A stretch of 64,000 nucleotides of DNA, from assembly GCA_977020255.1 (NCBI GenBank), contig CDROCS010000506.1, forward strand, positions 1,736,001-1,800,000, written 5' to 3'. Within the stretch, counting starts at the first letter, position 1. Each line of letters opens with the position of its first letter. The translations under genes and the position numbers were made by a program. Positions 7,908-11,060 of the stretch are shown here, piece by piece. Under the pieces are notes generated by a model that saw only the letters and a program-made list of their open reading frames with translations, had not been told where the DNA came from and ran no database searches. The stretch comes from Obrimoposthia wandeli (lineage: Eukaryota).

Positions 7908-8489
7908 ATGAACAATTCAAAATCTTTACTTATTAGTAGTACTTTATTTGCTGCAAGTACTTTTACTTTTGCAGCATCTGACCCCATTAACTTAAACTGT
8001 GACGCTCTATTAGATCAAGAATATTCAACCTTCGAATTTATTGATAATCTCAATGGCACAGTAACCGATTTACGAACGAGTCTAATTTGGGCTAAATGTA
8101 CCTTAGGTCAAACTTATGTTTCAGAGACAAACTCTTGCTCAAGTTCTGGTGCTGAAAATTATATCGACTGGGGAGATGCTCTATCCGCGGCCGCTGCTTA
8201 TGAAGTAAATAATATTTCAGGTTGGCGACTACCCAATATTAAAGAATTAGGTTCATTAGTGGATCGCAGTTGCGCTGCCCCCACAATTAACTTAACGCTA
8301 TTCCCAAATACGCTATCAAGTATTTATTACTCAAGTACACCATTCAAAGCCAGTAGTATTGATGCAAGCTATGATCACCTAGTATCACGTGTTATCGACT
8401 TTTCAGATGGTACTGAGATGCCACTAACAACACCAGAAAGTTCAAATACCAGCTACGTGATACGCGCTGTTAAAGGCGGATATAACTAA
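7908..8489 (+). CDS. Secreted DUF1566 (Lcl C-terminal domain) protein
   Basis: Signal peptide; DNLNGTVTDLRTSLIWAKC, WGDAL, GWRLPNIKELGSLV, INLTLFP motifs; GGAG RBS, 11 bp after the previous stop. Confidence 0.85.
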   Translation: MNNSKSLLISSTLFAASTFTFAASDPINLNCDALLDQEYSTFEFIDNLNGTVTDLRTSLIWAKCTLGQTYVSETNSCSSSGAENYIDWGDALSAAAAYEVNNISGWRLPNIKELGSLVDRSCAAPTINLTLFPNTLSSIYYSSTPFKASSIDASYDHLVSRVIDFSDGTEMPLTTPESSNTSYVIRAVKGGYN

Positions 8490-8531
8490 AGCACGACTAA
8501 CTCAAGCTCAAAAACTAACTCAAGATCAAAA
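8481..8531 (+). repeat. 18-nt tandem repeat after the second DUF1566 gene
   Basis: ACTAACTCAAGCTCAAAA (8496-8513) / ACTAACTCAAGATCAAAA (8514-8531), resembling the gene end TATAACTAAAGC. Confidence 0.7.
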
Positions 8532-8556
8532 ACGGCGAGCCTAAGCTCGCCGTTTT
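8529..8556. terminator. Bidirectional intrinsic terminator
   Basis: AAAACGGCGAGC-CTAA-GCTCGCCGTTTT between convergent genes. Confidence 0.9.
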
Positions 8557-8626
8557 GTTATTTGCAACAATGCGACTAAAAATCTAGCCAGTATCACTGC
8601 CGCACGTCAATTTTATATCTAAGTAA

Positions 8627-9544
8627 TTAAATAAGCTCTAATTCAACCATAGCGGCACGAATTTCGTCTTTTGTACCTTGGGTGAGTTCAATAACAGGTA
8701 AACGACACTCTGGCTCACATAGGCCGAGTAACGATACTGCATACTTCACACCAGCAGGGCTAGTTTCTTTAAACATCAAGTTATGCAGCGTAATCAAGCG
8801 ATCTTGTAATTCTCTCGCTTCAACATATTTACCCGCAAACGTTAATTCCTGCACTTGTGCATACAATTTTGGCGCAACGTTAGCAGACACTGAAATCAAG
8901 CCATTACCGCCAGACACGTTATAAGCAACCGTCGTACAATCATCACCAGAAAGGAAAGAGAAATCACCTTTAATTAATTGGCGTTCTAACCAAGGACGCG
9001 ACAAATCACCCGTCGCATCTTTAATGCCGACTACATTTTCTAGTTCAGCCATACGCGCTAATGTTTCAGGTTGGATATCAACAATCGCACGACCTGGAAT
9101 ATTGTAAACAATGATTGGCAAATCATTATTATCGTTAATTGCTTTAAAGTGTTGAAATAAACCTTCCTGACATGGGCGGTTATAATAACCAGCAACATGT
9201 AACGTCGCAATCGCACCAGCAGCTTGCGCATGATTCGATAATAAGATCGCATCCGTCGGGTTATTCGAACCAGCACCAGCAATAACCGGTAAACGCCCTG
9301 CCGCTTGGTTAACAACGATATCAAGGATCTGACAGTGCTCTTCTAGTGACAACGTAGGGCATTCGCCAGTCGTGCCAACAGCAACAATACCGTGCGTACC
9401 CTGCGCGACATGCCAGTCCACTAGATTACGTAATGCTGGTTCATCAATTTCATTATTTTTAAACGGGGTAACCAAAGCAACAATTGAGCCTTTAAGTAAT
9501 GCTTTCATTGCTGATTTATCGGTGACCGTTGAGTTAACACTCAT
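8627..9544 (-). CDS. dapA: 4-hydroxy-tetrahydrodipicolinate synthase (DapA) or close paralog
   Basis: GSIVALVTPF, GTTGE, YYN, YNIPGR, catalytic Lys in GIKDATG, LSGDD. Start placed at 9544 by a GGAG RBS 5 nt upstream; the ORF-track start at 9583 lies inside a terminator. Confidence 0.85.
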   Translation of the reverse strand: MSVNSTVTDKSAMKALLKGSIVALVTPFKNNEIDEPALRNLVDWHVAQGTHGIVAVGTTGECPTLSLEEHCQILDIVVNQAAGRLPVIAGAGSNNPTDAILLSNHAQAAGAIATLHVAGYYNRPCQEGLFQHFKAINDNNDLPIIVYNIPGRAIVDIQPETLARMAELENVVGIKDATGDLSRPWLERQLIKGDFSFLSGDDCTTVAYNVSGGNGLISVSANVAPKLYAQVQELTFAGKYVEARELQDRLITLHNLMFKETSPAGVKYAVSLLGLCEPECRLPVIELTQGTKDEIRAAMVELELI

Positions 9545-9564
9545 AGAAGCTCCATTTCGGTTAT

Positions 9565-9600
9565 AAAAAAACCTCGAATACATAAATTGCGCTCGAGGTT
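9565..9600 (-). terminator. Leader terminator (attenuator) just upstream of dapA
   Basis: Minus strand AACCTCGA-N15-TCGAGGTT followed by a T tract, about 20 nt before the dapA ATG; no minus-strand gene lies upstream. Confidence 0.75.
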
Positions 9601-9658
9601 CCTATAGGGATTTATATGTTCTCGAATCACATGCTACACAGGCTTTAATTTGCCTTGT

Positions 9659-9700
9659 TTATATTGTTTTCGTTTTAAAGTAAGCATGTGACGTTCTCAT
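9659..9700 (-). other. Candidate leader peptide MRTSHAYFKTKTI
   Basis: ATG AGA ACG TCA CAT GCT TAC TTT AAA ACG AAA ACA ATA TAA; overlaps one arm of a 9-bp inverted repeat; no clear SD. Confidence 0.4.
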
Positions 9701-9763
9701 TTTGATGAAAAAACATTTAAGCGGCTATTATTTATCAGTTACTTTTAATATTTATTAAGTTTA

Positions 9764-9792
9764 ATAATTCGTCATTCACCGCAAAATGTCAA
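9764..9792 (-). promoter_or_regulatory. Sigma70 promoter for the dapA leader
   Basis: TTGACA (9792-9787), 17-bp spacer, AATTAT (9769-9764). Confidence 0.55.
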
Positions 9793-9961
9793 GCAGGATA
9801 ATGCATAACTAAATTCAAACAGCTAATCACACATTAAATCGAGTCTCGAACAACTAGCGCGATACCTAATCAGCCAACCGAAAGGAGAAGATATTGAAGT
9901 TGTTTGGGTATATACTCTGCGACCAAATCTTCGAGCAAATTAAGTAAAAGAGCCCAAACCC

Positions 9962-10996
9962 ATGATCAGCAATAGCTACACCCTAGCAAGTCAATTACTC
10001 GCGCGTAACACTGCACATTTTGAAGATAAAGACCTGTTGATTGCGGGTTACATCGAAGATACGTATCCGACTGAATTAGCTAAAATAGCTAAAAAAGTAA
10101 CGTTATTCAGCTACGATTATTCAGCTAAACTACATTTTGATGATGTCAGCAATATTGATAACCATTGCTCGACTGAATACCAAGCGGTGAAGAAACACCA
10201 AGTTGCTTTGGTTTACATGTCAAAATCAAAAGCTGAAGTAGAATATTTATTAGCGAACATTACTGAACATCTTGAAGACGGTGCAATGATCTTCATGGTA
10301 GGTGAAAACAACGCCGGTATTCGTAGCGCAAATAAATTCTTTGCCCCGTATGGCGATATTTGTAACAAACTCGATGCAGCACGTCGCAGTTCATTGTTTG
10401 TGACTGAATTAAATAAACCAGTCGCTAAATTCGTGCAAGACGATTGGATCACAACATTCCCAGTCTCAGTAAATGGTGTTGATCTAACGGTATGTACATT
10501 ACCGGGCGTATTCAGCCACGGTAAATTAGACACTGGTAGTAATATCCTGCTTAATAACTTACACAAAAAACCATCAGGTCGTGTACTTGATCTTGGTTGT
10601 GGTGCAGGTATTATCGGTAGTTATATCGCTAAACGTTTCCCGACAAGCAAAGTTGAAATGACTGATGTAAGTGCACTGGCGGTTAAATCAAGTCAACTGA
10701 CATTAGCGGCGAACGAACTAGCAGGTCAAGCTTACCTTTCTGATGTGTTTTCTGATGTAAACGATAAATTTGATTATATCATTTCAAACCCACCGTTCCA
10801 TGCGGGATTGAAAACTCACTATGCAAGCACTGAAACTTTCTTAAAAGAAGCGAATAGCTACATCAACACACGCGGCCATTTAGTATTAGTTGCGAATAGT
10901 TTCTTGAAATACCCTGAGATTATTGAAGCGAGCTTTGGACATTGTTTATTACAAATAAAATCATCTAAGTTCGCAGTTTATTACGCAAATAAATAG
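9962..10996 (+). CDS. rsmC: 16S rRNA m2G1207 methyltransferase RsmC
   Basis: VGENNAGIRS, KLDAARR, LPGVFSHGKLDTGS, VLDLGCGAG, ISNPPFH motifs. Confidence 0.95.
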   Translation: MISNSYTLASQLLARNTAHFEDKDLLIAGYIEDTYPTELAKIAKKVTLFSYDYSAKLHFDDVSNIDNHCSTEYQAVKKHQVALVYMSKSKAEVEYLLANITEHLEDGAMIFMVGENNAGIRSANKFFAPYGDICNKLDAARRSSLFVTELNKPVAKFVQDDWITTFPVSVNGVDLTVCTLPGVFSHGKLDTGSNILLNNLHKKPSGRVLDLGCGAGIIGSYIAKRFPTSKVEMTDVSALAVKSSQLTLAANELAGQAYLSDVFSDVNDKFDYIISNPPFHAGLKTHYASTETFLKEANSYINTRGHLVLVANSFLKYPEIIEASFGHCLLQIKSSKFAVYYANK

Positions 10997-11060
10997 TTAC
11001 AAATATAGATAGTTGCGCGAATAAATAGTTACGTGAATAAATACTCGCGTAACTAAATCG
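10981..11060 (+). repeat. Five 16-nt degenerate tandem copies of the rsmC 3' end
   Basis: TTACGCAAATAAATAG (gene end with stop) / TTACAAATATAGATAG / TTGCGCGAATAAATAG / TTACGTGAATAAATAC / TCGCGTAACTAAATCG. Confidence 0.85.

Follow-up and report, generated by a model that had tools for sequence, protein, structure and literature searches.

A probable lysine-codon leader-peptide attenuator upstream of dapA in Moritella and related gammaproteobacteria

How does a bacterium adjust the committed step of lysine and diaminopimelate synthesis to its lysine supply? Lysine genes are thought to depend on the lysine riboswitch, on LysR/ArgP-type regulators or on enzyme feedback. The question is raised anew by a 64,000-nt stretch of DNA filed under Obrimoposthia wandeli (assembly GCA_977020255.1, contig CDROCS010000506.1, positions 1,736,001–1,800,000; hereafter the window, numbered from its first letter), in which dapA (4-hydroxy-tetrahydrodipicolinate synthase; 8627–9544, minus strand) is preceded by a conserved leader. 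The sequence is bacterial and belongs to a contig of the gammaproteobacterium Moritella, as the encoded DapA is 91–100% identical to Moritella DapA. An earlier sequence-only reading had proposed that an attenuator with a Lys/Thr leader peptide controls dapA. Our comparative and structural analyses indicate that the leader is probably a ribosome-mediated transcription attenuator of dapA that senses Lys-tRNA. The kind of control, the terminator, a 9-bp helix and an alternative helix proposed at the outset all held; the sensor open reading frame (ORF) did not, the most likely sensor lying at 9687–9634 and not at 9700–9659. Leader features described below are on the minus strand.

The spacer between dapA and the divergent gene rsmC was aligned among the window and first 7, then 13, further Moritella species (14 in all). 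This alignment, which had been suggested as a check, showed the leader to be strongly conserved: the promoter and the segment from ~9700 to the dapA ATG are almost invariant, and the flanking intergenic DNA varies. Mean pairwise identity is 0.91 in the leader, compared with 0.68 at third codon positions of dapA and 0.79 in the rest of the spacer. When a covariance model built from eight Moritella leaders (R1) was searched in 151 genomes of the order, each Moritella genome contained exactly one strong copy; the other 143 sampled genomes yielded no strong match, and the weak matches (E 0.01–1) do not adjoin dapA. A search of 73 distant dapA loci with R1 found nothing. The model is too Moritella-specific to reach homologues, which were found only through a DapA protein search (see below).

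Within this leader, the most likely sensor, judged by sequence comparison, is an ORF of 17 codons and a UAG stop (MLTLKRKQYKQGKLKPV, 9687–9634; UAG at 9636–9634) that lies in a different frame from the one originally named. It holds five Lys codons (9675–9673, 9669–9667, 9660–9658, 9651–9649 and 9645–9643), and a CGA Arg codon between the first two makes up a Lys-Arg-Lys (K-R-K) core. Start, stop and 17-codon length are intact in all 14 Moritella species, with no indels (indels do occur just downstream in L122); of the Lys codons, three never change (K5, K7 and K15), and K10 survives in 13 species and K13 in 11. The sequence GAG(A) at 9698–9695, 8 nt before the AUG, is a weak candidate for the Shine–Dalgarno (SD) sequence of this ORF, and GAG stands at that spacing in 14/14 leaders. 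On the Moritella data alone, a conserved ORF could have arisen by chance in so A-rich and invariant a stretch.

The ORF first singled out as the sensor (MRTSHAYFKTKTI, 9700–9659) is present in the window, but the comparative data in effect rule out the role given to it. Its ATG is lost in three of the 14 species (L114, L116 and L121) and its stop in L003; codons 3–4 vary non-synonymously, and a TAA at codon 7 cuts it short ahead of the K-T-K-T-I codons in 8 of 16 leaders. Conservation of the leader ORF was one of the points on which the sequence-only reading had itself staked the proposal, and the 9700–9659 frame is not conserved; on these comparisons its Thr and Ile codons are irrelevant. The competing short ORF noted at 9716–9675 also exists and was likewise set aside: its AUG overlaps an RNA 5′ end at position 9714, and its frame differs from species to species with the length of a T run (T6/T7).

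The 221-nt leader folds more stably than shuffled sequences (z −2.8). Helix P1 (1:2), the 9-bp helix already described, pairs UCACAUGCU (9691–9683) with AGCAUGUGA (9635–9627) and is present in the minimum-free-energy (MFE), centroid and alignment folds. It encloses the leader ORF, sequestering the AUG (9687–9685) in its 5′ strand, and the UAG opens its 3′ strand directly before the UUCGAG region. P1 is 100% paired in 15 distinct leaders, which differ there by two one-sided G-U changes. A second hairpin, P2 (9654–9641), lies inside the ORF in the alignment fold, with a GGC/GCC stem and Lys codons in its loop, and is a candidate pause hairpin. Folding of the nascent RNA gives an antiterminator (2:3), in its extended form when the 5′ part of the ORF is masked: UGUG.UUCGAG (9631–9621) with CUCGAG.CGCA (9597–9588), a duplex of −10 to −12 kcal/mol with z −1.2 to −3.4 in Moritella. 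Its core, UUCGAG (9626–9621) with CUCGAG (9597–9592), is the alternative helix proposed earlier and forms before the 3′ arm of the terminator exists. The concern that helices 1:2 and 2:3 overlap little is partly resolved: UGUG (9631–9628) pairs with CGCA (9591–9588) and reaches into the 3′ strand of P1, giving an overlap of four pairs, and the stop codon of the ORF lies exactly there.

The intrinsic terminator (3:4) consists of AACCUCGAG (9600–9592) paired with UUCGAGGUU (9578–9570), inner GCA/UGU pairs and a T7 tract (9571–9565). The 12 predicted hairpin pairs and the U7 run end 21 nt upstream of the dapA ATG, in agreement with the roughly 20 nt initially given; in Moritella the terminator is invariant except for G-U changes. 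All 26 modelled base pairs of the leader are kept in the 15 distinct Moritella leaders, the only changes being five one-sided G-U; within the genus, the modelled structure is compatible with the data but not proven by them. A 5′ hairpin (UUUUCAU/AUGAGAA, 9711–9694), which includes the GAG(A), also folds and is not kept in L114, L116 and L122. Inner UAUA/UAUA pairs considered for the antiterminator loop are not conserved, and RNAalifold proposed a long-range pairing of 9627–9616 with the dapA start region, where the leaders show no variation.

These elements suggest the following mechanism. Transcription would start at a conserved TTGACA/AATTAT promoter and yield a leader bearing the 17-codon ORF with its five Lys codons. 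With lysine plentiful, the pioneering ribosome would reach the UAG, where its footprint would cover UGUGAUUCGAG (9631–9621) and block pairing of this region with the 5′ arm of the terminator; the terminator (9600–9570 plus U7) would then form, and polymerase would stop before dapA. With Lys-tRNA scarce, the ribosome would stall on a Lys codon within the ORF and P1 could not close around it. The open P1 would leave 9631–9621 free to pair with 9597–9588 as the antiterminator, and polymerase would read into dapA. With no ribosome on the leader, P1 would form, part of the antiterminator would be hidden together with the AUG, and the terminator would prevail, so that the default state would be off. 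Translation of the ORF, stalling, termination and the response to lysine are what we infer here.

We modelled the ribosome by masking a 28-nt footprint on the nascent Moritella leader RNA and refolding the remainder. A ribosome whose A site holds K5, K7 or K15 lets the extended antiterminator form, whereas one with its A site on the stop codon abolishes it. When the A site is moved to K10 or K13, the thermodynamic prediction continues to close P1 around the masked stretch, a closure that we take to be sterically impossible around a real ribosome. The ribosome-free nascent fold contains P1 and a 5-bp remnant of the antiterminator. In these models, which are purely geometric and thermodynamic, antiterminator and terminator are mutually exclusive and a ribosome at the stop codon masks the 5′ strand of the antiterminator.

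The promoter that the sequence-only reading assigned to this leader (TTGACA 9792–9787, a 17-nt spacer and AATTAT 9769–9764) is the best sigma-70-type match of the region (10/12) and is almost invariant across the 14 Moritella species; its −35 block CTTGACATTT is also retained upstream of homologous leaders in other genera. RNA evidence was taken from assembled contigs of four metatranscriptome runs (three studies) placed on positions 8400–10300. All four cover the leader, which is therefore transcribed. In one run, a contig ends at 9753, near the start expected from the −10 box and in agreement with the leader of about 210 nt implied by the promoter. A further RNA 5′ end, representing a second start or a processing site, was found at 9713/9714 in contigs of runs X1, X5 and X7 (two studies); these contigs continue into Illumina adapter, and two extra letters fit a T7 strain variant. 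Depth in run X1 is ~72 downstream and falls to 2–3 upstream of 9744, with almost no RNA further upstream. Read from contigs, the 5′ end at 9714 is suggestive. A single RNA contig spans the leader through dapA, and in run X7 leader-only pieces are deeper than the dapA contig.

Two observations concern the 5′ region of this transcript. The nucleotide G9714 precedes a T6–T7 run (GUUUUUU, 9708–9714), a context that would suit either a processing site or a second start at which the transcript may slip. Downstream of the −10 box and ahead of the conserved leader (9735–9760), Moritella species carry unrelated AT-rich insertions of 0 to ~85 nt (21 nt in the window, ~45 nt in L110/L111 and ~85 nt in L122), and this inserted segment is missing from RNAs that begin at 9714.

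Is the Lys-rich ORF found beyond Moritella? When 401 genomes of the order were searched with the DapA protein, this dapA type (56–68% identity) was recovered in ~94, among them GCA_040215105.1 and GCA_017498065.1, and we read 77 upstream regions in addition to the 14 Moritella loci (91 in all). A short ORF with 3–6 Lys codons lies 20–38 nt before a terminator just upstream of dapA in 44 of the 77. These ORFs fall into at least seven distinct peptide families with Lys richness as their common feature. The K-R-K core is common to Moritella and four peptide groups, in which the homologous ORFs have 22–26 codons (for example, L140:1346–1414, L137:1327–1398, and L154:208–273 and L166:213–278, both on the minus strand); others share Lys richness only (L174:175–252, minus strand, L197:423–512 and L164:442–516). 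ORFs with at least three, four and five Lys codons were observed at 58, 52 and 41, respectively, of the 76 terminator-bearing loci (among the 91, Moritella included), and the corresponding fractions of loci in control shuffles of the upstream regions were 0.15, 0.05 and 0.018. Although species of one genus do not count as independent cases, the seven distinct families of peptide do. A Lys-rich leader ORF was found in six of 73 distant dapA loci and a K-R-K-like one in none. Where this dapA type lacks a leader, the gene directly upstream is mostly lysS.

An alignment of 24 leaders places the AAACGNAAA (K-R-K) core in register across genera and aligns the Moritella terminator arms AACCUCGA/UCGAGGUU with AACCCCGG/CCGGGGUU (CCCCGG/CCGGGG) of other genera; two of the pairs differ by compensatory changes, C-G to U-A and G-C to A-U. 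Across genomes of the order, compensatory changes are found in the terminator and in the 1:2, 2:3 and 3:4 pairings. The layout is textbook in the L154, L161 and L150 types: helix 1:2 forms between the K-R-K codons and the final codons of the ORF, helix 2:3 (z −2 to −4) forms between the stop-codon region (GCGUGACCG or a similar sequence) and the 5′ arm and loop of the terminator (CGGUUACGC or a similar sequence), and the terminator itself is 3:4. The intra-ORF hairpin with Lys codons in its loop keeps its position in other peptide groups, and its stem covaries between them (CCGCU/AGCGG, CUGCU/AGCAG, GCCUG/CGGGC and AACCCA/UGGGUU). In Moritella, the counterpart of the relatives' region 2 is UUCGAGAAC, now just past the stop codon, and P1 takes the 1:2 role. 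The nucleotides diverge, yet the ORF persists with its Lys codons and in its position, which favours a translated leader peptide over an aptamer.

Several observations weigh against attenuation by a translating ribosome. In Moritella, GAG(A) is the only SD-like element, and the AUG lies within a stable helix, so that initiation would have to precede P1 folding. The Lys codons are dispersed and not tandem, and a few species have other codons in place of K10 and K13. Third positions are invariant in ten ORF codons, versus 21% of amino-acid-conserved dapA codons in the genus; the nucleotides thus appear constrained beyond the regulatory codons, and the overlapping structures account for only part of this. 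Among the 15 distinct Moritella leaders, no base pair shows a compensatory change. The full-length MFE structure always contains the terminator once its 3′ arm is present, which means that antitermination must be kinetic, and no ribosome is needed for the short UCGAG/CUCGA helix to form. RNA contigs span the terminator, so read-through is at least not rare. In the L140-type and L174-type groups, a simple test of 2:3 pairing gave no good antiterminator.

What else could such a leader be? That the ribosome reads the right leader but in the MRTSHAYFKTKTI frame is scarcely credible: the ORF exists and its final codons are of the aspartate family, but its start codon and length decay within Moritella and it has no counterpart in other genera, where the other frame is conserved. 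The excess of nucleotide conservation inside the ORF over what codon choice needs is better accommodated by a riboswitch-like or bound leader, in which the ligand of the P1 domain, with its invariant A-rich loop, would be a metabolite, a small RNA (sRNA) or a protein such as Hfq that chooses between antiterminator and terminator, the ORF being incidental. Such a leader would also fit the invariant blocks AAACGAAAAC and AAACAAGGC, which hypervariable positions separate, and the AUG and UAG may sit within the palindromic helix for structural reasons. Across genera, however, the loop nucleotides diverge while the Lys-rich ORF, its frame and its position relative to the terminator persist, which is unexpected for an aptamer; there is also no Rfam match and no second genomic copy, as a regulon would predict. 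We regard this possibility as unlikely, if the least so of the alternatives.

Slightly less likely again is that the K-R-K..K peptide arrests its own ribosome, in whose tunnel free lysine or some other small molecule would be sensed, as with TnaC or SpeFL, in place of the supply of Lys-tRNA. Conservation of the Arg between two Lys residues in four peptide groups through different codons (CGA, CGC and CGU) hints at selection on the peptide; yet the L174-type and L195-type groups lack K-R-K and share only Lys richness, and in the L154 type the K-R-K codons also form one strand of a helix, which explains their conservation. Finally, a promoter, an RNA of ~150–190 nt and a strong predicted terminator of its own could constitute an independent sRNA gene that happens to stand before dapA, with dapA expressed by leak-through only. 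The greater depth of leader-only contigs in run X7 fits this idea, and attenuator RNAs may double as sRNAs, as the passage on rnTrpL in PMC10117765 describes. Against it, the 21 nt between terminator and ATG are too short for a dapA promoter, the unit keeps strictly to this dapA type from genus to genus and occurs once per genome, and one RNA contig joins leader and dapA. An independent sRNA gene is improbable, whereas a trans-acting role alongside attenuation could exist. Lys-tRNA-sensing attenuation thus remains the preferred explanation.

Like thrL, trpL, hisL, pheL, leuL and ilvL/ivbL, the dapA leader combines a short ORF rich in codons for the end product, 1:2, 2:3 and 3:4 helices and a terminator before the first biosynthetic gene; as in the enterobacterial attenuators, the stop codon is placed so that a terminating ribosome would mask region 2, and, like thrL, the leader serves the aspartate family. 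It differs from the enterobacterial attenuators in its amino acid, lysine, and, in Moritella, in its dispersed Lys codons (5/17), with the AUG in helix 1 and the UAG in helix 2. The lysine riboswitch (RF00168) likewise exerts lysine-dependent control through a leader terminator, as is proposed here, but it binds free lysine by a five-helix aptamer of ~180 nt, whereas the dapA leader would read tRNA-Lys charging through the ribosome. The two coexist: every Moritella genome has one true lysine riboswitch (115–120 bits) elsewhere (L226:1501–1685, equivalent to G102:C1:1074696–1074880), which precedes not a biosynthetic gene but a gene of the NhaC/Na+-H+ antiporter family, a candidate lysine transporter.

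No Rfam, Pfam or NCBIfam family accounts for the leader. The sequence-only reading had found no lysine riboswitch core and had called for an Rfam search; scanning 8500–11000 at E ≤ 10 gave no match of any Rfam family to the leader, RF00168 included, and nine homologous leaders gave none above chance. The Rfam amino-acid leader models (Thr_leader, His_leader, Leu_leader, Trp_leader and others) matched neither the window region nor those nine leaders, and no NCBIfam or Pfam family matched the leader peptides. A 2013 survey of attenuators names those for His, Leu, Thr, Trp, Ile/Val and Phe (PMC3766115), and a survey of Shewanella cis-regulatory RNAs does not mention dapA. We found no lysine leader peptide or dapA attenuator in the literature, of which the older part was incompletely covered, and an earlier description is possible. 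The closest published idea, as far as the relevant passage goes, is a Sinorhizobium small ORF with Thr/Lys codons before the gene for aspartate dehydrogenase, proposed as a leader peptide (PMC10117765). As here, a small ORF with aspartate-family codons stands upstream of a related pathway gene, and in Sinorhizobium it is translated; it differs in phylogenetic group, in the gene concerned and in being Thr-dominated, bears no sequence relation to the dapA leader and comes, in that passage, with no terminator logic. A Lys-tRNA attenuator class of dapA thus appears new to Rfam, Pfam, NCBIfam and the literature searched. On balance, and with less confidence than we place in the attenuator itself, we favour the view that lysine has its own, so far uncatalogued class of leader-peptide attenuators on dapA, with no fewer than seven peptide families spread over many genomes of a single gammaproteobacterial order, and that the Moritella form would be a shortened and remodelled version with its start and stop codons moved into the strands of helix 1.

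DapA matches TIGR00674 (309 bits; cut-off, 206), and dapA starts at the ATG at 9544–9542 behind an SD sequence GGAG (9553–9550). A bidirectional terminator (8529–8556) parts dapA from a convergent gene (7908–8489), which makes dapA monocistronic; weak Rfam matches to STnc320 and MicX at 8520–8616, below the gathering score, are merely this terminator. On the other side, rsmC (9962–10996, plus strand; NF007023, 320 bits) is a conserved divergent neighbour of the leader–dapA unit, and a divergent methyltransferase gene (rsmC-like) is also found beside it in two other genera. All 13 Moritellaceae genomes examined have two dapA genes that are 43% identical: the rsmC-adjoining copy with the leader, and a canonical copy (G102:C1:171666–172526) that adjoins a gcvR-like gene and lacks such a leader. 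The leader-preceded type seems to be the sole dapA in many other genomes of the order. An alphaproteobacterial origin of the window dapA was considered and rejected, as relatives at 56–68% identity exist in the same order and the impression was an artefact of a pattern-based locus search. In small genomes of the order (~2–2.5 Mb; L153, L156, L162, L171 and L188–L192), this dapA type lies directly downstream of lysS without a Lys-rich leader; the adjacency of dapA to lysS, which encodes lysyl-tRNA synthetase, is another lysine-related linkage.

The rsmC–dapA spacer also contains a dispersed repeat. The sequence TATACCCAAACAACTTCAA (9894–9912, minus strand, within ~9855–9935) has 7–11 copies per Moritella genome, some of them in inverted pairs 245 nt apart, and hence resembles a miniature inverted-repeat transposable element. 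The ~80-nt stretch that carries it between rsmC and the dapA promoter is present in 11 of the 14 species and absent from three, and a copy also stands before the canonical dapA. The motif TATACCCAARCWACTTCAA, which occurs near both dapA paralogues, was considered as a shared regulator site and rejected, being part of a dispersed repeat with 7–11 copies per genome. As for the source of the DNA, the Moritella contig (at least 1.8 Mb) sits inside a 1.35-Gb assembly of 6912 contigs, and it would therefore derive from a symbiont, pathogen or contaminant of the sequenced organism; the DapA of one Moritella species genome (G102) is 100% identical to that of the window.

The leader ORFs described here are unannotated small genes that genome pipelines have overlooked. 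If our interpretation is true, lysine would be the seventh amino-acid specificity for leader-peptide attenuation, and the leader would be a compact natural lysine-responsive part. The Moritella cell would then possess two lysine sensors, one for free lysine (the riboswitch, on a transporter) and one for charged tRNA (the attenuator, on dapA), and the attenuator would explain how a large group of gammaproteobacteria from marine and aquatic habitats controls the committed step of lysine and diaminopimelate synthesis.

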